From contig JBHGNT010001165.1 in NCBI GenBank assembly GCA_043228905.1, positions 1 through 11,327 of the forward strand: 11,327 nucleotides of DNA, written 5' to 3'. Source of the stretch: Azolla caroliniana. Its lineage: Eukaryota > Plantae > Polypodiophyta. The position numbers and the translations under genes are program-made. A model generated the notes under the pieces. The model was not told the origin of the DNA, did not search any database, and was given only the letters and a program-made list of their open reading frames with translations. Of the stretch, positions 1-11,327 are shown piece after piece; position 1 is the stretch's first letter, and the number at the start of each line of letters is the position of its first letter.

Positions 1-366
1 GCGTCCTTCGCCTCCTCCTAAATAAATTCACTTTCTCTAAAGTAGCCCAATGGATTGTTAACAAGTTCTACGATATACTTATCTTCAAGCCAACCAAGTA
101 CTTTAGCACCTTATTGCATACATGTTCGAACTCAACTCCAGGTCGCGTATAATCACTCTCATTGCAATCAACCATGGCTACTCCAATATTAATTAATTTT
201 GGCTTTCTTTCTATAAACTTTCGTTCCAGCCAGGGAAACGGTGAAGGATAGTGATTTACGGCATGACTGTACAGTTTAGCCGTCACCACTTGTAATTTGA
301 GTCGATAGCCAAACACGGATTATGCCCTCTACGCAGACAGAGAACCGCCCAACCTAGCTGCGCAAA

Positions 367-394
367 TTGCTTGCTTGCTTGCTTGCTTGCTTGC
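367..394. repeat. (TTGC)7 microsatellite
   Basis: Seven perfect TTGC units read directly. Confidence 0.95.
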
Positions 395-861
395 CCCCTT
401 CTTGCGGATGCGGAAGAACTTGCTTGCTGCTAAGTTTTATTAGCGCAGGTGAAGGCCTTTCCGCTGTCTGTGAGGCGGATAACGGGCAATCTCACTCATT
501 GCGCTGTTTTATTGACTTCGCCACGGCACCACTTTTTTGGCGGATAAACGGCCTTCATGCTGCCGTTAGTCGAGGCGGCCCGATGAACCAGTGCAGCAGA
601 AAAGAATTTCGGTTATAGAATGGCCGGTCTCTTTCACTTGCTTCTGATCAAAGGCCGGCAGAGAAGTAGCCGTACAGATAGCATAGGCTGCGGCCTATTC
701 TTGCAGAGAAAACAACTTCGAGAATGATAACCCGTAGGTACCGGTGGGTTCGATCAGTCCCTGGAGTTCGCTAGGTGATATCTATACGGCAAGGAGGATA
801 TGAAGCTATCCCTACGGAATCCAATCCCTGTGGTCCTAGATCGGTCCCGAAGCACTAGTCC

Positions 862-908
862 GGTACCTGCTGCAATCAGTCCCTATGGTACTTGCTGCAA
901 CCAGTCCC
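862..908. repeat. Two-copy direct repeat, 22-bp unit, 25-bp period
   Basis: GGTACCTGCTGCAATCAGTCCC (862-883) vs GGTACTTGCTGCAACCAGTCCC (887-908); two C/T differences. Confidence 0.8.
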
Positions 909-1277
909 GAACCCAAAGGTTTGCTACGCTGCCGCTGTAGGCATAGTTGGTACCGATGTTCACTGAGATTGGGAATCCCCGCTTCGTGCTGATCGTATCG
1001 TATTCTCTTCGCTTATTGCAGCTGTGGTAATCGAGGCTTTGCTTTGTATTCTCGAAGTACGAACGCTAGCTGATCGCTTCGTATCCTTTCAACCGTTGAG
1101 GAGCTGCAACTGCTTGGCGTTGTCTATGGCCATGATTGTATCGCGGTTGGTTCGGGCGGGAATCAATCAAATCGCCACTTTTCACGCGCCCGCCGGTTCA
1201 TCCCGGAGGAACCGCACAGGAGTAATTCAGACTGTTTCTCTAGTCAATTTCGCGTGACCGTAAGACGCAATTCTGCA

Positions 1278-1349
1278 AGCGGAAAAAGGGACTCGAACCC
1301 TCAACTCCAGCCTTGGCAAGGCTATACTCTACCATTAAGCTATTTCCGC
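1278..1349 (-). tRNA. trnG-GCC: tRNA-Gly (GCC), plant mitochondrial type
   Basis: Reverse complement GCGGAAATAGCTTAATGGTAGAGTATAGCCTTGCCAAGGCTGGAGTTGAGGGTTCGAGTCCCTTTTTCCGCT. It has a 7-bp acceptor stem GCGGAAA/TTTCCGC, anticodon loop TTGCCAA and T loop TTCGAGT. Confidence 0.96.
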
Positions 1350-1368
1350 CAGCGGAACCAGAGCCGAG

Positions 1369-1442
1369 TGCGGTTCTTCCCCCGTAGAGAAAGCGCTATA
1401 GCTTTCGGGGGAAGAACCGCAATGAAGACTTCATTGCGGTTC
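1369..1442. repeat. Two overlapping perfect inverted repeats
   Basis: TGCGGTTCTTCCCCCG (1369-1384)/CGGGGGAAGAACCGCA (1406-1421), and GAACCGCAATGAAG (1414-1427)/CTTCATTGCGGTTC (1429-1442). Confidence 0.9.
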
Positions 1443-1892
1443 CCTTGGAACTATTGACTTGAGACTTCGATGACTCATCGATAGGTCCATGCCCGGAGAG
1501 ATTCGAACTATCCCGGATTCGAAGTTTGGTGCTCGAGCTACAGGCACAAGTTGACCTTACAGACCGAACAGAGGCTAGTAAAATCTAACGCTTAGCTTAG
1601 AAGGTCGTAAGATCAGACCAGACTTCGCCCGGAAAACGAACGTAAAGCATTGAAAGAGCGTTGCTTAGTGGCTGGCTTTGGCCGCCTTTACGACCCAAAG
1701 ACGAATCTCCGGGTCCCAGCTTATTATCCTGCAATGTTACGGATTGACTGTTACTGGTGCTAGGTAAGGAGTTTCAGTTTTGGGCGTCACTTTCGAAATA
1801 TCTCGAGTAATGGGTTCATGTGAGTGCATGAACAATCCAACTACTCTACTAGGCTGCTTCCCGCCCTGTTTCGCAGCTTGCTCCCCTTCGGC

Positions 1893-1940
1893 GGCACGGC
1901 ACGGCACGGCACGGCACGGCACGGCACGGCACGCACGCAC
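1893..1940. repeat. (GGCAC)8(GCAC)2 microsatellite
   Basis: Read directly from the sequence. Confidence 0.95.
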
Positions 1941-2035
1941 CTGTCTTCCCGCATTCCGTCCGCTGAGCGCAAAGCGTCGACAAAGAAAGCAGCTACCTTT
2001 TCATTATTATACTGTAATCCCAGCGCAAACAAAAA

Positions 2036-2048
2036 AACTGCCATGAAT
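2036..2048 (+). promoter_or_regulatory. AACWGCCATGAWT upstream motif (rpl6 copy)
   Basis: AACTGCCATGAAT begins 57 nt before the rpl6 ACG. The same 13-mer lies upstream of atp1 and cox1. Confidence 0.6.
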
Positions 2049-2092
2049 ATCGAGAACGGAACAAGAAGCCACAACGAAATCAAGTCAAGTCT

Positions 2093-2392
2093 ACGGAAGC
2101 TTAATCCGTTTGTTCTTCGTAAACAATTGGATACAAAGTCAGTACTAACCCATAAGGCTCTGTTTCAGATTCAAAACTAGGGTTCAGCTATGAGATTTGA
2201 CTCTAGGTCACGCCTTCGGTTTGTGTTTTCCGCTTGAAACATAATATCACTCGTTGTACCGGAACGGATCCCTGAAAAGTTACTTAATCCGCTGTTAGCG
2301 TCAAAAATTGTAAACCCCCTGAAGTTCATAAAGGAAGAGGTATAAAATATTGAAATGAAATTATACGTAGAAAACAAGGAGAAAAGAAACAA
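2093..2392 (+). CDS. rpl6: Mitochondrial ribosomal protein L6 (requires RNA editing)
   Basis: Genomic frame T(M)EA*SVCSS*TIGYKVSTNP*GSVSDSKLGFSYEI*L*VT...KPPEVHKGRGIKY*NEIIRRKQGEKK matches plant mt Rpl6 (GYKASTNPQGS, KLGFSHEIRLQV, KPPEVYKGKGI). It has an ACG start, 8 internal stops at Q/R-compatible positions, and CAA at 2390-2392 as the predicted edited stop. Confidence 0.9.
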
Positions 2393-2395
2393 ATC

Positions 2396-2839
2396 GCGTC
2401 ATATATTCCAGGAACCAAATCAGTTTCCAATAAATAAGTCAGACTTGCCTCAACCTAAATCTCCGGAACTGGACCCAAAAAAGCCACTTGGGTTTGTGAT
2501 TAATCAGGTCCCGGCGATAACACTAAGGTTAGTAATCTGACTCGGCACTAAATTGACCAGATTAGCATAATAGTACGTTGAAACAATTTCCTAGTTGATT
2601 CGGAATTAAAGAGAGAAATTTAGTAATATATCAAATGATTAATTAATATCAGCCGTTACCGCGGATTCCGTCACAAAGCAGGATTGCCATTACGTGGTTA
2701 ATGAACCTACAGCAATGTTAAGATCTGTCGCAAGTCAAGAAAAGTTTCAATCAATCAACGAAAGAAGAATAATTCGTTTTTCATTCACAAAAATGAGAGA
2801 AGGCAAGACGCCAGGAAGAAAACGAAACCGAAGGAATAG
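2396..2839 (+). CDS. rps13: Mitochondrial ribosomal protein S13 (requires RNA editing)
   Basis: Frame ASYIPGT...GTGPKKA...YRGFRHKAGLPLRG**TYSNVKICRK matches Rps13 (SYILG, FGIGPKKA, YRGFRH.AGLPLRGQRTH.NAKTCRK). The Met position holds GCG and there are 10 internal stops. The end is either genomic TAG 2837-2839 or an edited CAA/CGA at 2756-2761. Confidence 0.88.
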
Positions 2840-2841
2840 AA

Positions 2842-3288
2842 ATGAAGAATACAATTATGTAAAAGCAGCCTTCTGAACACTAGTAATAGTAGCCGCGCCG
2901 CTAACAGAAATGGGGAAAACACCACTAAAAGCCAAGAAAGCACCACGGTATTGCCCATACTTAACCAACTTTTAGTAATACTTTCATTATCATAATAAAT
3001 TGCAAGGGAGATGAAAGAACAGGGTCCTCCTCAGGTTGTTCAAGAGGGTTTAAGGGTTTCCGTCGCTCGGACAAGTATGCAGCTTAAGCAACTGCGGAAC
3101 GTGTCGCGTAAGCTGCCACTTAACCCGAAATTAGGTCAGTTGAAGTGAAAATAAAAGGAATTGGTCTTGTAAGAAAGGGATTTTCGCCGAAAAGTTCAAA
3201 AGAGGGAGGTCCTGTTACTATCAGAATTCACGACGTAATCCCAATGCTACATAATGGATGCTGACCCCCTAAAAAACGTCGTGTCTAA
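2842..3288 (+). CDS. rps11: Mitochondrial ribosomal protein S11 (requires RNA editing)
   Basis: HGIAHT*PTFSNT...GFKGFRRSDKYAA*ATAE...VEVKIKGIG...IHDVIPMLHNGC*PPKKRRV* matches Rps11 (GFKGSRRS..YAAQATAE; DVTPTPHNGCRPPKKRRV). In-frame ATGs at 2842 and 2857; 12 internal stops. Confidence 0.9.
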
Positions 3289-3858
3289 ATACCACCATAG
3301 AGCTATTTGTCTCTACTCACCAACGTCAGAAGGTTTGGATTGGTCCTACAGCCCAGCAGGTCATGGAAGGCTTGGCTCGAGCAAGGCGAAGGAATAAACC
3401 CGAATAGAGCAGCGAAGCGGGGAGATGGAATGGAAAAAGTCGACTCAAATTAGAATAATTGCAGTTTAGTTAATACCTTACTCGTCTATTCGTTCATCCA
3501 ATTTCTCCATACGACAAATATCCATTTTTTTTTGCCAATCGATCGAAAGAGTCGGCTCCGCGAAAGGTAGTTGCACTGCGGGGCTCACTCTGGAATTTGA
3601 TCCTATGATTTAGAGCTATGTGGATGCCCTCCCTCCGCGTAGTCCCTCACCTTTCAGTTGTATATATCTATTTCTCTCCGTCTCTGCATAGCTACGGATA
3701 CACGGCTTTAGCGCTTCATTCACCCAGTCTATTCTGTCAAAACTTACTTTCTTTATAATGCAAACCAACACTGGGGGAAGGTCCGATCCCTCCCCTCTAT
3801 ATCAATGACATGGTTCACCTCGTCGTGAGGTTACTTCCCTTTCCCATCTCTTTCTTGC

Positions 3859-3911
3859 TAGGAACTGCCATGAATGCAGGAGACTGCCCTGGGTATAAAG
3901 TGCCGAGGAAA
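3859..3911 (+). promoter_or_regulatory. 53-bp leader element shared with cox1 upstream region
   Basis: TAGGAACTGCCATGAATGCAGGAGACTGCCCTGGGTATAAAGTGCCGAGGAAA is 50/53 identical to the reverse complement of 10601-10653. Confidence 0.8.
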
Positions 3912-3935
3912 GGGATTCGACGGAAGAGAAAGGGA

Positions 3936-4305
3936 ACGAGATTGTTTAAAGCTAGAGCAACGGAATAACCATCTACTATCTCGGAAGAAAGAATTACCAA
4001 CTATCACACCAAATTGCCAGTGGATGAGATCGGTTGAGTGGTATCGGTTGGGGATGGAATTGCACGTGTTTATGGATCGAACAAGATTCAAGCAGGAGAA
4101 ATGGTAGAATTCGCCAGCGGTGTGAAAGGAATGGCTTCGAATTCTGAGAATGAGAATGTAGGAATTGTTATATCCGGTAGTGATACCGCCATTAAAGAAG
4201 GAGATATGGTCAAGCGCACTGGATCTATTGTGGACGTTCTTGTAGGAAAGGCCATGCCGGGTTGTGTAGTTGATGCGTTAGGAGTACTCATTGATGGAAA
4301 AGGTG
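3936..4305 (+). CDS. atp1: ATP synthase F1 alpha subunit, exon 1 only
   Basis: [36 protein letters not shown]...[14 protein letters not shown]...IDGKG. Stops at 3966 and 4035 are U-to-C candidates. The start is uncertain: in-frame ACG at 3936 or 3960, or ATG at 3870. Homology ends at GGT G|GGGCG. Confidence 0.92.
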
Positions 4306-4960
4306 GGGCGGCCGTTAGATCATCTGCGGTCGAAAAAGGTTGCATACAGGCATGAGACTAACCAGAACCCGCGAAGGGAGGCCGAGACCATAGCATGTCG
4401 CAAAAGAAAGCACGATTGAAGGCAAAGCGGACGAATGAAAATCATCGTGCAGCCCGGTAGTTTGGTGAAAGATGAGGCCGAAAGCAGCAAATCGGAGTCT
4501 TTTTCGGGTGACCATGCCCTATTCGTTCGTTCGACGTGTTGCCAGATAGACGCGGATATGCTCCCTGCCTGCTATAGGCACATTATGGTCAGGCCCGATT
4601 GAGTGCCACTTCTCCCGCCCGTAAACGAAAGTTTACAGCAAGCATGAGAGCGGATTACCTATCTATTCTATTGGGGACGGAAGACTGAACGACATCCCGG
4701 CAAGCCAAGCAAAGTGGGACCTTTCAACTCTTATCTTATTATGGTCCCAACCATCCGCAGGTAAAACCGGCGAGATCTTCGGCGGGAGGAAAGCCCCGGA
4801 AAGAAGTCAGAGGGCCCATACCACCTGCCTACCCTCCTAAGGCGGAACCGGCACTTGGTGAATGCCAAGTAGAAAACGGGAAGGAGCCTATGCATTTGTC
4901 ATGCCCGGAGTTCGAAACAGAATAACGAAAAGGCAAGCAAGTTTTACCTGACTTAACTGA
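4306..4960 (+). other. 5' part of group II intron atp1i361g2 (no domain V/VI or exon 2 seen)
   Basis: Begins GGGCG (GUGYG variant) in phase 1 directly after IDGKG, matching the fern atp1i361 site. The 3' boundary given is approximate. Confidence 0.7.
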
Positions 4961-4987
4961 AAAGCCTAGAAGTGTTTGTAATGCACA

Positions 4988-5061
4988 GCATCCTTAGCTC
5001 AGTCGGATAGAGCAACAACCTTCTAAGTTGAAGGTCACAGGTTCAAGTCCTGTAGGATGCG
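4988..5061 (+). tRNA. trnR-UCU: tRNA-Arg (UCU), mitochondrial type
   Basis: GCATCCTTAGCTCAGTCGGATAGAGCAACAACCTTCTAAGTTGAAGGTCACAGGTTCAAGTCCTGTAGGATGCG. Acceptor stem GCATCCT/AGGATGC, anticodon loop CTTCTAA. Confidence 0.95.
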
Positions 5062-5215
5062 GAAAGTGCACATTAGATTATATACCTACGGAATGCTTTG
5101 CCCTTGTTCAGGGCGGGCTAGCGGGTTCTTCCTTTCAACCGAACCTGCATCATGCTTCGGTCACTTTTCGCTATATTGGTATATGGGATTACTTGCCCCT
5201 TTTCACTTCTTTTTA

Positions 5216-5228
5216 AACAGCCATGATT
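5216..5228 (+). promoter_or_regulatory. AACWGCCATGAWT upstream motif (nad4L copy)
   Basis: AACAGCCATGATT begins 66 nt before the nad4L ACG and matches the other copies at 11/13 positions. It runs into TATAAAG, a heptamer also present in the atp1/cox1 leader. Confidence 0.55.
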
Positions 5229-5281
5229 ATAAAGAACCAATCTCACTACGATTTTTATGAAACGAAGAAAGACTTTTTCTT

Positions 5282-5584
5282 ACGGATCTGGTCAAATATT
5301 TGACATTTTCCATGATTTCCTCTCTTTCAGGTATTCAGGGAATTCTCTCAAATAGAAGGAATATTACTATTATGCCGACGCTAATTGAGTTAATGTTATT
5401 GGCTGTCAATTTGAACTCTCCGGTATTTTCTGTCTATTCGGATGATATGATGGGTTAATCACTCACTTTACTAGTGTTAACGGTGGCAGTTGCGGAATTC
5501 GCAATTGGGCTGGCCATTCCGGTGGTAACTTCTCGAATTCGCGGGACCATTGCCGTGGAATTTCCTAATCGCATGAAAGGTCGA
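5282..5584 (+). CDS. nad4L: NADH dehydrogenase subunit 4L (requires RNA editing)
   Basis: T(M)[11 protein letters not shown]...NRRNI...[11 protein letters not shown]...DDMMG*...[14 protein letters not shown]...[13 protein letters not shown], 100 codons. ACG start, TAA at 5456 (predicted CAA) and terminal CGA (predicted UGA). Confidence 0.93.
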
Positions 5585-5980
5585 GCACCATTAAACTCAT
5601 TGCACTTCGTTTTTCCTTCTTGAATACGAAGTATACTTTGGCATTAAGGGAGGAGATACGATTCGAATCTCTCTTTTGAAAGCGGATTTACTGAAATCAA
5701 ACGCTTTTTTCATTCGGCCACTTCCCGCTTCGACTTTCCGAGCCAAGATTAGGGTTTATTTTGATATATGAACCCGGGCATATACGGGCTTTATGAGGTT
5801 TTTTCATAAAACGAAATACTCCCGATAGAAAAGTAGGGTCCCATTCACCTTATTCGCTTGCACCACCGGCTTGCTAGAGGCTCTACCGTTTCCGAAGTAA
5901 TAACTTTTAATATATTAAGAAGAACAAAATAGAATCACCATGGCTAATACTTACTCTTTTACAGTCTGTCAGACTTTAAA

Positions 5981-6036
5981 CGGCTTCTTTTCTTTTCTTT
6001 TCTTTTCTTTCGGGCCTCGCCCAAGAAAGAAAGCCG
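5981..6036. repeat. (TTTTC)n tract inside an imperfect inverted repeat
   Basis: CGGCTTC(TTTTC)4TTTC GGGC-CTC-GCCC AAGAAAGAAAGCCG. Confidence 0.75.
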
Positions 6037-6305
6037 GATCAAGCCAGTTATAGGCTATAAACGTAACAATTGTTATTTGGATTTTCTTATTTACACGCCT
6101 GAAGTATCAGGCAACTGTTTGAGGTCCCACGCAGCAGCAGCACGGTCTCGCTGATTTGTTTAGTCGAACGAAAAGGTGTCGCAAAAGAGTTTGATGAGGT
6201 CCAATGGCCTCGTATATTTTGCTTATTCAACACTCACTGGAAGATCCTGCTACGCTACCGAGGCTGTGGGCATTGCTAATTCTTTGCCTCTTTGGAGTTC
6301 CCCTT

Positions 6306-6306
<1 letters not shown>

Positions 6307-6346
<40 letters not shown>
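6307..6346. repeat. (TTGC)10 microsatellite
   Basis: Ten perfect units read directly. Confidence 0.95.
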
Positions 6347-7224
6347 GCGGGCGGAAGAATGGGCACATGTCATTACAGCAGCGGAAGTGAAACCGGAGAC
6401 CTGGCGGGAGATTACACCCATTACTGCAAACACTACTAACGAAAAGGTTGGGCAAGAAGACTCAACGATGAAGCGGCACAAAATAACGTAACGAGGGCTA
6501 CGAGCAGTACAACAGCTACAGGCTGTATACATTCTAACCATCCATAGTGTTGGAAGCAAAAACGACGACTATCTCAATTATTGGGGGGAAAGGGGGTATA
6601 TTTTATTTTGCAAAAAGGGGATCACGGCTTAGCCCAACTCACTGCTGGATCTTATAGTAGACCGCTTCTTCAGCCACAATGAATGCATAAATGATGCTGC
6701 AAACCAAACCACTGCTAGCCAATATCTTACGACATCCAGGCCGCAGGTCGATTGGGGGTAAACTTCTGTAGGTCATATCGTTGATTTCTCTAGCGGAAAC
6801 GATGGCATCATTTTGAGGCTATTTCAATTCGTATTAGTAGCCTTTTGATCAATTATTGGACTTTTCTTTTTCCGTAGTCGTCGCAACGACCGACAGCGGC
6901 GAATGACGGGCGGGAGTATTCTCACCAACAGCCAAGGGAAAGCCATGGCACTTCAAGCGCTCTTTCGCTATTGACCCTTGCCGCCAGACAAAACTGTAAC
7001 TACAATAAGAAGTATTTCCGAAAAGCAAGCAGCTTTGGCCTATCAGGATCCCGGCCCTTATCTTCCGCATCTTCGGCCGTTGCACCGGCCGGGAAAGTAT
7101 CCGGAATGTAGGATGATCCGCCTTGTCAGTGGCCGTTCCGCTTACGGTTATTAGCTTTGGCTAATAACTTACTAAGAGATCATCAACCTGCCTCCCTCGT
7201 ATGGCAGGGATTGACTAAAGAACT

Positions 7225-7350
7225 GGGCTTGATCTTGGCCCGGAATGAACGCTAGCAATATGCCTAACACATGCAGCAAGTTGGACGTCGTTTCTGTTCT
7301 AATTCTATGGAACAGTTGAAGACGAAGTAGCGAACGAGAAAGCTAATACG
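7225..7350 (+). pseudogene. rrnS: Degenerate fragment of the 5' end of the small-subunit rRNA gene (mt rrnS-like)
   Basis: GGGCTTGATCTTGGCCCGGAATGAACGCTAGCAATATGCCTAACACATGCAGCAAGTTGGACG...GAAGTAGCGAACG resembles GAGTTTGATCCTGGCTCAGAAYGAACGCTAGC..ATGCTTAACACATGCAAGTCGAACG...AAGTAGCGAACGGG. It has many mismatches and an insertion, and similarity stops after about 125 nt. Confidence 0.65.
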
Positions 7351-7642
7351 GAATGGATTGTCCTTCTATTTGTAGTAGTTTGTTTCGGTATTCTGGTATC
7401 TTTCCTTTGTTCTTCATTATGCGTAAAAGTTCAAGTTCTCTTCGCTGCAGGATCTGCTCGTCTTTTGCGGATGCGGACCACTTTTCTCTGCCGGTCAAGC
7501 ACCAAGCTTATCATTGGGGAGGACCCGATGATGGTACGCGGCTGAACGCCAAAGTGATTTGCGTAACCAGAACTGACAGCTAAGGGCAAGGTTACAAGCG
7601 GCGAAAAATAGGAATCAGGCATGTTCCATTCGGTGGTTCCGG

Positions 7643-8822
7643 TTGCTTAAGACTGGTTTCCCTGATAGCTGAAAGTTCTCCAAAAGTATGAAAAGCTGGA
7701 GGGCTTTATACCATCCATTCGAATGTGGTTGAATTCTATTCACCAGCCCGAGGACTTAGAGCACACTTGTTCCCACTGCTCGAAGTTTTGAAAACTACTA
7801 CAAAAGAACGAGGGATCCCCGGTACGAGAACATAAGGGCCGAAACTACTTGAGGCATTCCGTCCGACGTAAGCATCTGGATAATCAGGGATGCAACATGG
7901 CATGCCCGAAGGACCTGGGAGATGCGTGAGAGAGAGAGTCAGATTCGCTCCAAGGAAAGTAATCCAAAGATAAATTTAACCCGAAGTCTCTAGGTATTAA
8001 AGACCAGGCATTTTACCTATCCGGTAGTAGAACCCTACGAATAAAGCAGAAACAGCTCCCGTAAGAAATGCATGATAGGAATATGCAGCCACGTGATAAG
8101 TATCATATAGAGCAACGTCTATCCCGAAATTAGCCGAGACTATACCAGTAAGTCCTCCTATAGTAAACGGAAAAGTAGACCCTACTGCAAATGACATGAG
8201 TGTTTTGTATTATATTGAGCCTCCCCACATGATGGCAATCCGACTAGGAACCTTGATTCCAATAAGCACGACAATAATCATGATGGCCGCCGTGAAGTAG
8301 GCACGTGTATCCACGTCTGAGCCTACAGTAGACGTATAATAAGCCCGAGCAGTAAATCCAGGAACTCCAATACTGATCATGGCATACACCGTGCCTGAAT
8401 AACCGAAGACAGGTTTTCTGGGGAGAGTGGAGACGATATAACTAATGATACCAAGTCCTGACGGAATAAAAGTATGAACCTCTAGATAACCGGGGAGCCG
8501 AGAAGGATGCTAGTATAAGATAGGGTCCCCTCCTCCAGCAGGGTCAGAAGAGATGATATTAGAGTTTCAATCGGTTGATGACATGGTAATTGCACCCGCC
8601 GGTACGAGAGGAGGTGGTAAAGGTAGGAATGCTGTCACTGAAACGAACCGAACGGATAGGGATAATCTATGCATGGTCATTCCGGGTCCGCGCGTGTTAA
8701 GGATAATGGTTATAAAATTAATGAAACCTAAAATAAAGAAAACACCTGATAGGTAGAGACTAGAAGTGGCTAAATCAACAGCTCCTCCGGAATGACTGGT
8801 TATACTACTCAGAGGGGGATAG
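7643..8822 (-). CDS. cox1: Cytochrome c oxidase subunit 1, exon 2 (requires RNA editing)
   Basis: [18 protein letters not shown]...[11 protein letters not shown]...[10 protein letters not shown]...GGLTGIV...[15 protein letters not shown]. One frame with no net frameshift; the differences from consensus that I checked are C/T. The end is an edited CAA at 7645-7643 (524 codons from the canonical start) or genomic TAA at 7594-7592. Confidence 0.96.
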
Positions 8823-9903
8823 CACATATGTTAAATAGCCTCAGGTTGTGTTTGCCTAATGCTATACGCCATATGTCTCTGTATGGATCGGACTGTACCT
8901 TTATCTATCATCCTGTCATGAAGCCTTTCCTTTAGAGAATCCCTCAGGTCTACTCGAACTTTTCCCGATTATTCTTATGGCGGATGGCCCTTGACCGGAG
9001 CTTCAGCTCTAGTGATTTTATACGAATCGCTTTAGAAGAGCTAACTTGTACCAAGCACTGTCCCACTGTAGACAGTCTTGAATCAATAAGGGCGCGCAAG
9101 AAAGAAAAGAAAAGAAGCGGCTTCAGCATGAAGGGCGGGCGGCTGAGTAAGAATATGTGGCCTTCGTCCCATAGCCCCTGATAAAGGCCAATTCGGCCAA
9201 CCGCTTCTTCTTCTTCGGTTCGGGAAGCGCCTTGTTTTCTGCCCTTCCTGTATGAGGTCTCTCTGCCTCTATAAAGCCGGTAAGCCGATCAAGGTCAGCG
9301 GCCATACCTCCGAGATTGACACAAGTCTCTAGAAGAGTAGCACCCCTTGAATCTTTACGGATGTAGCACTTGTGCCCTATTGAGAGCTGCTGCTTTGGAT
9401 CTTTTAATACCTGATGGGCTGGCTTTACGAACTCCCTCGCAATAGAAATGCTTACTAATCAAGTATGGATATTGACCAAATATAAGAAAAAGCTAGCATC
9501 TTTCGATCTGATACACTCCCATGATCTTATGCGCCGCATTGACAGACCTTACATTAAGCATCTTCCTGACGTAGTAAAGGATCTGTAGATTGTATTTGCC
9601 TTGGGCAAGCAATAGGGAGACTCAGGTTGTACTCGCGTCTTAGAGCACGATGCTGCCTGCTGAAGCAGCTCACACCCACAAGCTATCCGCAGAGTGATAG
9701 ATATTCCGCATTGAGTCTCTGATGGGAGGGAAGATTCGCCCTCCCAGGCAGGTTGTCCCCTTGTGGGAAAGGTTTTTGCATATAGCAGTTTGGATTTTGT
9801 TGAAGGCCTGCGGCCCGGCTTAGCCTTTTTTTCTGTAGCGAGGACGTTCCTGCATCGAGCGGAATTACTGTTCCCTATGTCTCCACAGGGCACGGCCTTT
9901 TTA
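8823..9903 (-). other. Group I intron cox1i395g1 (1081 nt)
   Basis: Interrupts TGG ACG GT|C TAT CCC (WTVYPP) exactly 395 nt from the canonical start position 10298. The exon ends in U and the intron ends in G. R-like TCAGAGACTC (~9723-9714) and S-like AAGGTACAGTCC (~8901-8890) are present. Confidence 0.9.
9000..9560 (-). pseudogene. Decayed LAGLIDADG homing endonuclease remnant in the intron
   Basis: DRLTGFIEAE (~9290-9260) resembles a LAGLIDADG motif, and IFGQYPYLISKHFY (~9485-9445) resembles the FDKYPLLTSK domain end. The frame is broken; boundaries are approximate. Confidence 0.6.
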
Positions 9904-10580
9904 ACCGTCCACCCAGTGCCACTACCCACCTCTACTGAGGCTAAACTTGATGAAAGCAACAGCAAAGATGACGACAACCGAAATAGAATATTATTTAATC
10001 ATAGAAATGCCGTGTCAGGTGCACCTGTAAGAATCAGAACGAACCGGTTACCGAATCCACCTGTCATCGCCAGCGTAACCGGAAGGGATGTCGTTAAAGA
10101 AGCGTAAGCGATTATTAACACATTATAAGGTTAATGATTTCCACCAGGAATTTAATGGCCGGGTTATGCTGATTCCATACAGATTAGTACTAAGAGGCGT
10201 GTGCCCATTACTCCAGCCGTGACACCAAAGATTGAGTGTAGAGTACCTATATCTTTGTAGTTCGTAGAAAATAGCCATCTTTACACGAAACGGTTTGTAC
10301 ATGAAAGAGTCTTGGCTACTATAATCAATGTAAGGGAGATGAATCCTATTGCAAATACAATCGGAATGAAGAAATCCTAAAATCCAATAATCAGTTCCAC
10401 AACCGAAGAGACTTCTAGATCTTTCAGGATTTCTAGGCCACCCGAAAGATCGGGTAGTGTATTCTACGACAGATTGAGGAGCACCTGCGGGAACAACTCT
10501 TCGTTGTTATTTTAAAGAGTTGCGATGTCCTCGTGCAATTCGGTCTATAATCTTTCTAAGCTGTTTATGACTATGGGCAT
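9904..10580 (-). CDS. cox1: Cytochrome c oxidase subunit 1, exon 1 (conserved part 10298-9904; putative extension 10580-10299)
   Basis: [19 protein letters not shown]...[24 protein letters not shown]...[11 protein letters not shown]. The canonical Met position holds ACA, and the nearest in-frame ATG is at 10580. The conserved part is certain; the start is inferred. Confidence 0.88.
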
Positions 10581-10600
10581 GTCTTATCCAATCTGTTTCT

Positions 10601-10653
10601 TTTCCTCGGTGCTTTATACCTAGGGCAGTCTCCTGCATTCATGGCAGTTCCTA
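10601..10653 (-). promoter_or_regulatory. 53-bp leader element shared with atp1 upstream region
   Basis: Minus strand TAGGAACTGCCATGAATGCAGGAGACTGCCCTAGGTATAAAGCACCGAGGAAA, ending 20 nt before ATG 10580. Confidence 0.8.
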
Positions 10654-11327
10654 TGGTTGCAAAAACAACAAGGAGTCGGTTCCCGTATATACCCGGCTTT
10701 TCTTGTATGCTTTCGGCAAGCAAAAAAAACGCTAGCGGGCCTACCACGCTTCGCGCCTGCGTCTTTGCCAGACAGTATTTGCCAGTAGTGCCATCCCACC
10801 CGACCTGAGGATTTAGTTTGTCCCTTGCTAAAATATCTTTGAAGAACTTGTACTGATTTTCCAGGTCGGTCCTCGCGAGCGGATATGGGCCCTAGAGGAT
10901 GGTGTAGAAACTCTCTGCCCGTAAGTCGTGCCTGAAAGCGGTTCATCCGGGTGAAGCCGGCGGCGAGGAATTGACTGGTGCTGCGTTCACTGCTTGCTCG
11001 AAGGCCCGTATCCGCGCAGGCAGTAAGCAACAGATTGGTTCGTAACAAAAACAGCTTAGAAAAGAAAAAGAATAAAGTTATTTCCTATTAAACTAGTGAT
11101 TGTAAAGAAAAAAATCCTTCACAACGCCAAGGTATTTTAGCAAGACACTACATAAGACTTTCGCCCTGGATGATATATGGGTTCTCATGAGAAAGAATGG
11201 TCGGTTTCCTTTTAATGAAGTAAAATCCACACCTTGACGCCCGGAATCCCGTAACGAGTGAATGTTTATTAGGAACCGAACTGATGGGCTTTCCCTAAAG
11301 TAACACCAAAAGTCTACCTCCTTTCGT

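Follow-up and report, generated by a model that had tools for sequence, protein, structure and literature searches.

The 11,327-nt window analyzed here (the whole stretch of contig JBHGNT010001165.1 from Azolla caroliniana) is fern mitochondrial DNA. It carries the cluster rpl6-rps13-rps11, exon 1 of atp1, trnR, nad4L, cox1 (on the minus strand) and trnG. Contigs that are near-identical to the window are present in ENA and JGI assemblies, which may be metagenomes of Azolla holobionts, judging from the run descriptions and the literature. When contigs from RNA-type runs are compared with the DNA over positions 1700-5700, dozens of C>T and T>C differences are seen, all of them within genes. Such changes in both directions are the kind of editing known from hyper-editing ferns. 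The subject of this report is a short sequence element found ahead of each protein-coding unit in the window. Its 13-nt core, AACWGCCATGAWT, has exactly four matches (Table 1), all in the sense orientation and 57-73 nt before the first start codon of the unit.

By chance, 0.01 matches are expected, and four or more occurred in none of 200 dinucleotide-preserving shuffles of the window. With two mismatches allowed, only one extra match appears (at 3454 on the minus strand), which is at chance level. The zone 45-75 nt upstream of the four first cistrons covers about 124 of 22,654 strand positions; four out of four hits in it have a chance probability of about 1e-9 (a rough guide, as the zone was set post hoc). 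The atp1 and cox1 copies sit in one duplicated block of 53 nt (94% identity), and thus the window has three independent leaders rather than four. Neither exactly nor with two mismatches is a copy of AACWGCCATGAWT found before rps13, rps11, trnG or trnR in the window. The initial annotation of this DNA had reported four sense-oriented copies of the motif, at 57, 73, 66 and 69 nt from the starts of rpl6, atp1, nad4L and cox1, and none before rps13, rps11 or the tRNAs; the window scan bears this out. A hairpin (CTGC-N7-GCAG) was considered as a feature of the element and rejected. It is restricted to leaders of the atp1/cox1 type, and the other leaders lack it.

Table 1. Copies of the element, the duplicated leader block and the associated start codons in the window.
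Feature	Position	Strand	Match to 13-nt core	Remarks
Element copy 1	2036..2057	+	2036-2048	AACTGCCATGAAT + ATCGAGA + AC; precedes the rpl6-rps13-rps11 unit
Element copy 2	3863..3884	+	3863-3875	AACTGCCATGAAT + GCAGGAG + AC; precedes atp1 exon 1
Element copy 3	5216..5237	+	5216-5228	AACAGCCATGATT + ATAAAGA + AC; precedes nad4L
Element copy 4	10628..10649	-	10637-10649	same 22 nt as the atp1 copy; precedes cox1
53-nt leader block, atp1 copy	3859..3911	+		contains element copy 2; inverted repeat I1
53-nt leader block, cox1 copy	10601..10653	-		pairs with the atp1 block
rpl6 start (ACG)	2093..2095	+		57 nt from element start; AUG through C-to-U editing at 2094
Putative atp1 start (ACG)	3936..3938	+		73 nt from element start; from sequence reading and by-eye alignment to homologs P0008 and P0013
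nad4L start (ACG)	5282..5284	+		66 nt from element start; MDLVKYLTF... after editing
First ATG in frame with cox1	10578..10580	-		69 nt from element start (10649 to 10580)

Related DNA was gathered in three ways: by exact-protein look-ups of open reading frame (ORF) pieces, through homologs of the atp1 and nad4L exon pieces, and by a motif scan in which a metagenome collection was queried with AACTGCCATGAATRYHRRRRAC (52 stretches were returned, about half of them chance matches in bacterial contigs). The related contigs come from JAEIGA01, OSAE01, GUSA22, LIUQ22, ERR10900049 and GCA_013290165.1. About 404 kb of fern mitochondrial DNA, which is redundant, were scanned, and genes downstream of elements were identified by Pfam and PDB matches.

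Upon alignment of 22 distinct sites on their first A, the 13-mer proved to be the core of a 22-nt element, AACWGCCATGAWT-RYHRRRR-AC. About 14 of these sites had been found without any constraint on positions 14-22. The motif that was initially annotated is real, but it covers only part of the element. There is little or no variation at positions 1-13, positions 14-20 read R-Y-H-R-R-R-R, and positions 21-22 are AC in 22 of 22 sites. The CATG at positions 7-10 is invariant save for one CATA and two TATG variants. Farther upstream than -4, the sites carry almost no information; ahead of the element, bases are favored only at -1 (R) and -3 (mostly A).

The element is found in the sense orientation before seven units, at the following distances to the start codon or the first in-frame ATG: rpl6, 57 nt; atp4, 57 nt; nad5, 45 nt; rps2, 61 nt; nad4L, 66 nt; cox1, 69 nt; atp1, 73 nt. 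The atp4, nad5 and rps2 cases are from Azolla-type contigs. Here, atp4 is identified by Pfam Mt_ATP-synt_B and has an in-frame ACG at its distance from the element start; its element is identical to that of rpl6 (22/22 nt). For nad5, which has an ACG at the given distance, the match is to the Nad5 subunit in a structure of plant complex I (7aqq), over residues 2-79. The third gene, downstream of L071:6364, was considered to be atp6 (from "SPLE"), but this is ruled out by its Pfam match (Ribosomal_S2), which makes it rps2. Ahead of the rpl2-rps19-rps3-rpl16 cluster stands only a degenerate copy, GCCTGCCATGGTA, in which the core CTGCCATG is retained; it lies 69 nt before the rpl2 ATG. The chance that this 8-mer core lands in the 31-nt zone of rpl2 is about 5e-4. 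No element precedes the internal cistrons rps13, rps11, rps19, rps3 and rpl16 in the window and the related contigs. The initial claim that every protein-coding unit is preceded by the motif thus holds within the window; in the wider set rpl2 has a degenerate copy, and a contig with rrnS has none within 3.5 kb. Every exact copy in the fern mitochondrial DNA scanned has a leader-like context. Outside leaders, the core CWGCCATG is found only at a universally conserved internal site of small-subunit rRNA and at an unexplained 12/13 site (L068:9336).

The element is also found upstream of a gene that does not code for a protein. In contig L060, an exact copy precedes the 5' part of rrnL by 163 nt, with a tRNA-like T-arm in between. 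This 5' part (5457-6054) matches positions 16-564 of the Rfam large-subunit rRNA model. The contig is taken as fern mitochondrial, as it contains two exact elements and an atp1/cox1-type leader, and its rrnL 3' part is 97.5-98.5% identical to that of Azolla-type contigs, which themselves end inside rrnL. As rrnL is non-coding, a transcription signal fits this copy better than a signal specific for mRNAs. The rrnL gene of L060 has an unusual arrangement (1893-4894 and 5457-6495): its 3' part, which contains an insertion of about 840 nt and follows a group II intron domain V, is located upstream of its 5' part. From this order, the gene must be split or permuted, being either trans-spliced or cis-spliced around a small circle.

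In L060, an uninterrupted 184-codon ORF (8983-9537, MDKQLIALIKKEYPALSD..., no Pfam match) begins 70 nt past an exact element whose leader is of the atp1/cox1 type. Since ORFs free of stops are unusual in a genome so heavily edited, this one may be foreign or mobile, having gained an expression signal. In some Azolla-type assemblies (L038:3068, L051:2267 and L053:5291 on the minus strand), rpl6 is broken at window position 2327, and an element with one mismatch, AACTGCCATGAGT, follows about 240 nt further on. Its upstream flank (GCCCAAGCACTAT) is homologous to that of the rrnL-associated copy in L060, and no recognizable gene lies downstream. In L032:70-830, no recognizable mitochondrial gene comes after an exact element that has a leader of the cox1 type. 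On the opposite strand is a stretch which may resemble a dynein-heavy-chain fragment, and trnW-like and nad4L sequences are found past this stretch. This copy may be an orphan next to a nuclear-derived insert.

Orthologous loci were compared with the element as anchor for atp1 (four other lineages), nad4L (two), nad5 (L070) and atp4 (one); a further nad5 contig (L037) differs too little from the reference to be of use here. In the diverged orthologs, the 60 nt upstream of the element have 23-32% identity, which is the random level. The element itself is identical at 19-22 of 22 positions, and the sequence downstream is 88-96% identical. For atp1 (L011, L012, L067 and L085), the element is conserved at 21-22 of 22 positions and the upstream sequence is unalignable. 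The nad4L orthologs (L028-L032) keep AACAGCTATGATT, and their upstream sequence is unrelated. In the downstream sequence, which is mostly coding, the compared lineages are about 4-8% diverged from the window, a substantial figure for plant mitochondrial DNA. Since the upstream sequence is random while the element and the downstream sequence are kept, the unit preserved by selection begins at the first base of the element.

Such a sharp boundary might also be created by breakage and rejoining at a dispersed recombination repeat that has no role in expression. Alternative genome configurations do break near copies of the element, as seen for the nad4L/rps2 leader in L071, for the 53-nt block of atp1 and cox1, and for the closure in L052. 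Neutral repeats, however, would decay and would be scattered in both orientations, whereas each copy with an identifiable downstream gene is sense-oriented and lies 45-73 nt ahead of it (163 nt for rrnL), and the sequence is held at 19-22 of 22 positions across lineages in which the flanks are randomized. We thus consider a mere repeat very improbable. Recombination is how the element and its leaders spread (atp1/cox1, rpl6/atp4 and nad4L/rps2), but it does not explain the retention of the element. Several angiosperm mitochondrial genes reportedly have shared 5' leader blocks, as described by Pring et al. in 1992 and by Hazle and Bonen in 2007. As in those plants, the same upstream block is found on different genes in the fern by duplication and recombination. 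The shared blocks comprise 53 nt for atp1/cox1, 22 nt for rpl6/atp4, and, for nad4L/rps2, about 48 nt together with the flank upstream, in which trnR is included (in L071, which represents another genome configuration, the nad4L-type leader precedes rps2). In contrast to the angiosperm blocks, those of the fern, which are otherwise unrelated, all begin with one 22-nt element, and this is the part that is conserved between species.

RNA evidence comes from assembled contigs of RNA-type runs, in which no end can be mapped to the base. For rpl6, atp1 and nad4L, RNA becomes abundant at the element or a short distance past it. The edited rpl6 contigs begin at 2072 (X4, X3) and 2060 (X12), which is 12-24 nt past the 13-mer. 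These starts are not artifacts of the assembly graph, because the segment in common with atp4 is only 22 nt and thus shorter than k = 31; those at 2072 are also within reach of the bubble caused by the first edit, which is expected to begin at 2064. Upstream of 1968, the depth is 0.7-4.5 compared to 46 in the rpl6 gene (X4), and 0 compared to 17-32 (X12). For atp1, the binned depth increases stepwise across 3844 (154, 1349 and 5961 in X4; 28, 1019 and 2571 in X12); the step from bin 3710-3843 to bin 3844-3977 is about 9-fold and 36-fold, respectively. For nad4L (X5), the upstream contig has a depth of 80 and the gene contig one of 438. Two contig starts near nad4L were rejected as 5' ends. The start at 5216 (X5) equals 5246-30, the first 31-mer to include the 4-nt difference that separates the nad4L leader from that of rps2, and is a branch point of the assembly graph. 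The start at 5253 (X4) equals 5283-30, a bubble at the presumed start-codon edit.

The RNA depth steps at the element and the conservation boundary fit equally well if the element acts in RNA. The transcribed 22-mer would then be bound by one dedicated protein, e.g. a P-class pentatricopeptide repeat (PPR) protein, which would set the 5' terminus of many mitochondrial RNAs, shield it and perhaps also make these RNAs competent for translation. The location in the leader region, 45-73 nt from the start codons, is compatible with this, and conservation that begins sharply at the first base is as for a footprint coinciding with the RNA 5' end. The only variant at position 7 is C/T (AACAGCTATGATT, L028-L032), which could be restored in RNA by U-to-C editing. 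PPR10-type sites define the 5' ends of processed chloroplast RNAs, and RPF-dependent 5' ends occur in mitochondria. Like these sites, the fern element is sequence-specific and would mark the 5' edge of a stable RNA, at which conservation sets in. PPR sites are, however, to our knowledge gene-specific, with one or two transcripts each, whereas the same element precedes at least eight different units and would be common to at least eight different RNAs. In addition, the edited rpl6 contigs (X4, X3 and X12) begin downstream of the 13-mer and do not include it, and contigs of X5 cross the element; the available RNA contigs do not show it at the RNA terminus. One copy is located upstream of an rRNA, the leader of which must be removed, and an RNA-level site would put a conserved AUG into every leader. 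PPR-bound sites in untranslated regions that stabilize transcripts are well known (PMC12548569). Taken together, an RNA-level 5'-terminal site is the main rival reading, yet we regard it as rather unlikely. A more far-reaching version is distinctly improbable in our view. The element would be the common 5' tag of essentially all mitochondrial mRNAs (and the pre-rRNA) of these ferns, and one dedicated protein would set the 5' end and pass the RNA to a mitoribosome that lacks Shine-Dalgarno recognition, in a cap-like manner. This could couple translation to the completion of the RNA editing that creates start codons.

C2094 in the rpl6 start codon reads T in three RNA-type runs (X5, X4 and X12) and in part of a fourth (X3). 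The identity of nad4L is based on a Pfam Oxidored_q2 match of 22.8 bits, which is below the curated cut-off of 26.1, and on nad4L homologs. For cox1, ATG 10580 would be the start codon, judging from the sequence. The conserved N-terminus is about 280 nt past this ATG; the RWLFSTN region follows 94 codons on, after five in-frame stops (TAA/TAG) of the kind that is removable by U-to-C editing. Neither cox1 (10296-10580, minus strand) nor rps2 (L071:6425-6650) has a start codon at the conserved N-terminus. In both, the first in-frame ATG (69 and 61 nt past the element) is followed by editable TAA/TAG stops. The regular leader length favors long N-terminal extensions of cox1 and rps2; otherwise, both leaders would be much longer than the rest.

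The core of the element contains an ATG, which might be a common start codon or the start of an upstream ORF, or the motif might position the ribosome. In atp1, this ATG is in frame with the gene (3870 to 3936, 66 nt) without an intervening stop, and the same holds for L011 (with a +6-nt indel) and L012; in species 3, it shares the frame of nad4L (P0124). In the window, the ATG is out of frame in rpl6, nad4L and cox1 (offsets of 50, 59 and 62 nt), as the initial annotation had stated for three of the four copies. The ATG was thus rejected as a start codon or upstream ORF, since its frame is neither common to the genes nor, as nad4L illustrates, conserved between species. A positioning signal is at odds with a start-codon distance that varies from 45 to 73 nt and with the copy that precedes rrnL. 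Purine-rich boxes (AGAAAG, GAAAC) are found about 12-22 nt before the starts (2071-2092, 3915-3935, 5262-5281 and, on the minus strand, 10581-10605). Four of eight leaders (nad5, nad4L, cox1 and rpl2) have a separate AxAAA-type box at -16 to -22, which is where the model for the plant mitoribosome expects it. In this model, an AxAAA box about 19 nt upstream of the AUG is the proposed contact of the mitoribosomal PPR protein mS83 (10.1101/777342). Both this box and the fern element are leader elements common to many plant mitochondrial mRNAs, but the latter is a 22-mer at a variable 45-73 nt rather than an A-rich pentamer at about 19 nt. We consider a translation signal very improbable.

That the motif is a lineage-specific mitochondrial expression signal, as initially suggested, is strongly supported by its distribution and orientation, by the cross-species conservation with its sharp 5' boundary and by the RNA depth steps. 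Among the three mechanisms that had been left open, the translation enhancer is disfavored by the variable spacing, the rrnL copy and the separate AxAAA box, and a promoter is favored over a PPR-type 5'-end site. The element is thus probably, though by no means surely, a lineage-specific promoter of a phage-type mitochondrial RNA polymerase. We favor this because the same sequence recurs ahead of first cistrons and, in a single fern, of an rRNA gene, but not ahead of internal cistrons; because the orientation is strict and the 5' edge of conservation is sharp; because the two-part build, a specific block followed by a purine run, recalls the CRTA plus AGAG/TATA arrangement of angiosperms; because the rpl6 RNA contigs start past the 13-mer; and because otherwise every leader would contain a conserved AUG. 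As a promoter, the element would mark the 5' edge of mitochondrial transcription units in the Azolla-type fern and its relatives. We infer that the nuclear-encoded phage-type polymerase would use the invariant 13-mer as the recognition part and would initiate at the element, in or just past the purine run, which would result in short leaders of about 25-55 nt. Frequent recombination of the mitogenome would spread copies to new genes and swap the upstream contexts, while selection would retain the element, from its first A, and all that follows it.

Plant and yeast mitochondrial promoters are among the closest known counterparts. In the yeast mitochondrial genome, the nonanucleotide promoter ATATAAGTA is a strict short consensus at every transcription unit, which is used by a single-subunit polymerase and has a mapped start site. 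It resembles the fern element in being strict, short and reused; the two differ in sequence, length and lineage, and the start is mapped in yeast only. The CRTA/YRTA promoters of angiosperms (CRTAAGAGA in dicots; recognized by the phage-type RpoTm/RpoTmp) are likewise short, are located upstream of many independent units including rRNA genes, and have been carried to new genes by recombination. They have a total length of about 20 nt, as does the fern element, and consist of a specific core followed by a purine-rich or TATA stretch. In angiosperms, CRTA is followed by AGAG or TATA at the initiation site, and -15 to +4 suffices in vitro (PMC5040748). In the fern element, positions 17-20 are purines in all 22 sites and are followed by AC, and by analogy this stretch may be the initiation site. 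In contrast to the angiosperm promoters, the fern sequence is unrelated and stricter (13 near-invariant positions), lies 45-73 nt from the starts and has no upstream conservation, and initiation at it is only presumed. By its sequence, the element is not a member of the CRTA/YRTA family. A sequence downstream in the atp1 and cox1 leaders, GGTATAAAG, was rejected as a CRTA-like core, as it is not conserved in the orthologs L011, L012 and L085. A trans-spliced atp1 exon 2 was considered as a promoter test and is inapplicable, exon 2 being in cis in L052.

Several points weigh against a promoter. Plant mitochondrial promoters are not usually so strictly conserved or so near to start codons. The consensus of the 22 sites has no CRTA/YRTA core, as the initial annotation had already remarked, but CATG at the analogous place. 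The rrnL case is from a single contig (L060). A second fern-like rrnL 5' region (L086) has no element within 370 nt upstream, and the rrnS of L046 has none over the 3.5 kb upstream; the element is therefore common but not universal. The rpl2 copy matches the 13-mer at only 9 of 13 positions. The RNA contigs show where abundance begins, not the chemistry of the 5' end (triphosphate) or the exact base. Finally, contigs from the rRNA-depleted run X5 cross the element at rpl6 (1824-2221) and atp1 (3577-4305), and therefore read-through RNA, or DNA in the library, exists.

The structure of the window itself deserves comment. In an independent assembly (L052:1-5516), the window end (10774-11327) continues into the window start (1-4966), with 100% and 99.9% identity. 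The window thus maps as a circle or has a flanking repeat. Other contigs leave the window at about 4926/4966 (L001, L003, L052) or at about 10828 (L002), and thus several configurations coexist. Exon 1 of atp1 ends at 4305, and RNA contigs join 4305 to ...GALSAVERRRV. In L052, exon 2 is in cis about 890 nt downstream of exon 1 (L052:5750-5881; also L015:1503-1634). In the window, the atp1 intron is interrupted at 4966, and trnR-nad4L follows. In the RNA and DNA runs, a repeat of roughly 183 nt (4784-4966) is joined to two alternative contexts on either side, so that the "broken intron" may be an alternative recombination product and need not imply obligatory trans-splicing. An RNA-type contig (X12) that spans 2168-3502 covers rpl6, rps13 and rps11 and has 71 edited positions. 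It is consistent with one co-transcribed unit, a contig across genes being no proof of a single transcript. Microsatellites are found at 367-394 and 6307-6350 ((TTGC)n) and at 1892-1931 ((CGGCA)n), the latter just 5' of the rpl6 element. In an X5 contig, the (CGGCA)n tract is 10 nt shorter and a nearby site at 1860 is 4 nt shorter; the 1860 deletion is also found in X3.

In the open-access literature that was searched, which included the preprint on the Azolla and Pteridium mitogenomes, the Haplopteris mitogenome paper and the paper on the Salviniales editome, we found no mention of the element, no description of a fern mitochondrial promoter or general 5' signal and nothing relevant on shared leaders, although a prior description is possible. 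A strict 22-nt consensus would make mitochondrial transcription in ferns directly testable. The element is also of practical use as a landmark for annotation where hyper-editing hides the start codons of a genome. For cox1 and rps2, this landmark predicts a start at the first in-frame AUG past the element and thus long N-terminal extensions. If each unit carries its own compact signal, this would be how gene expression survives rampant recombination.

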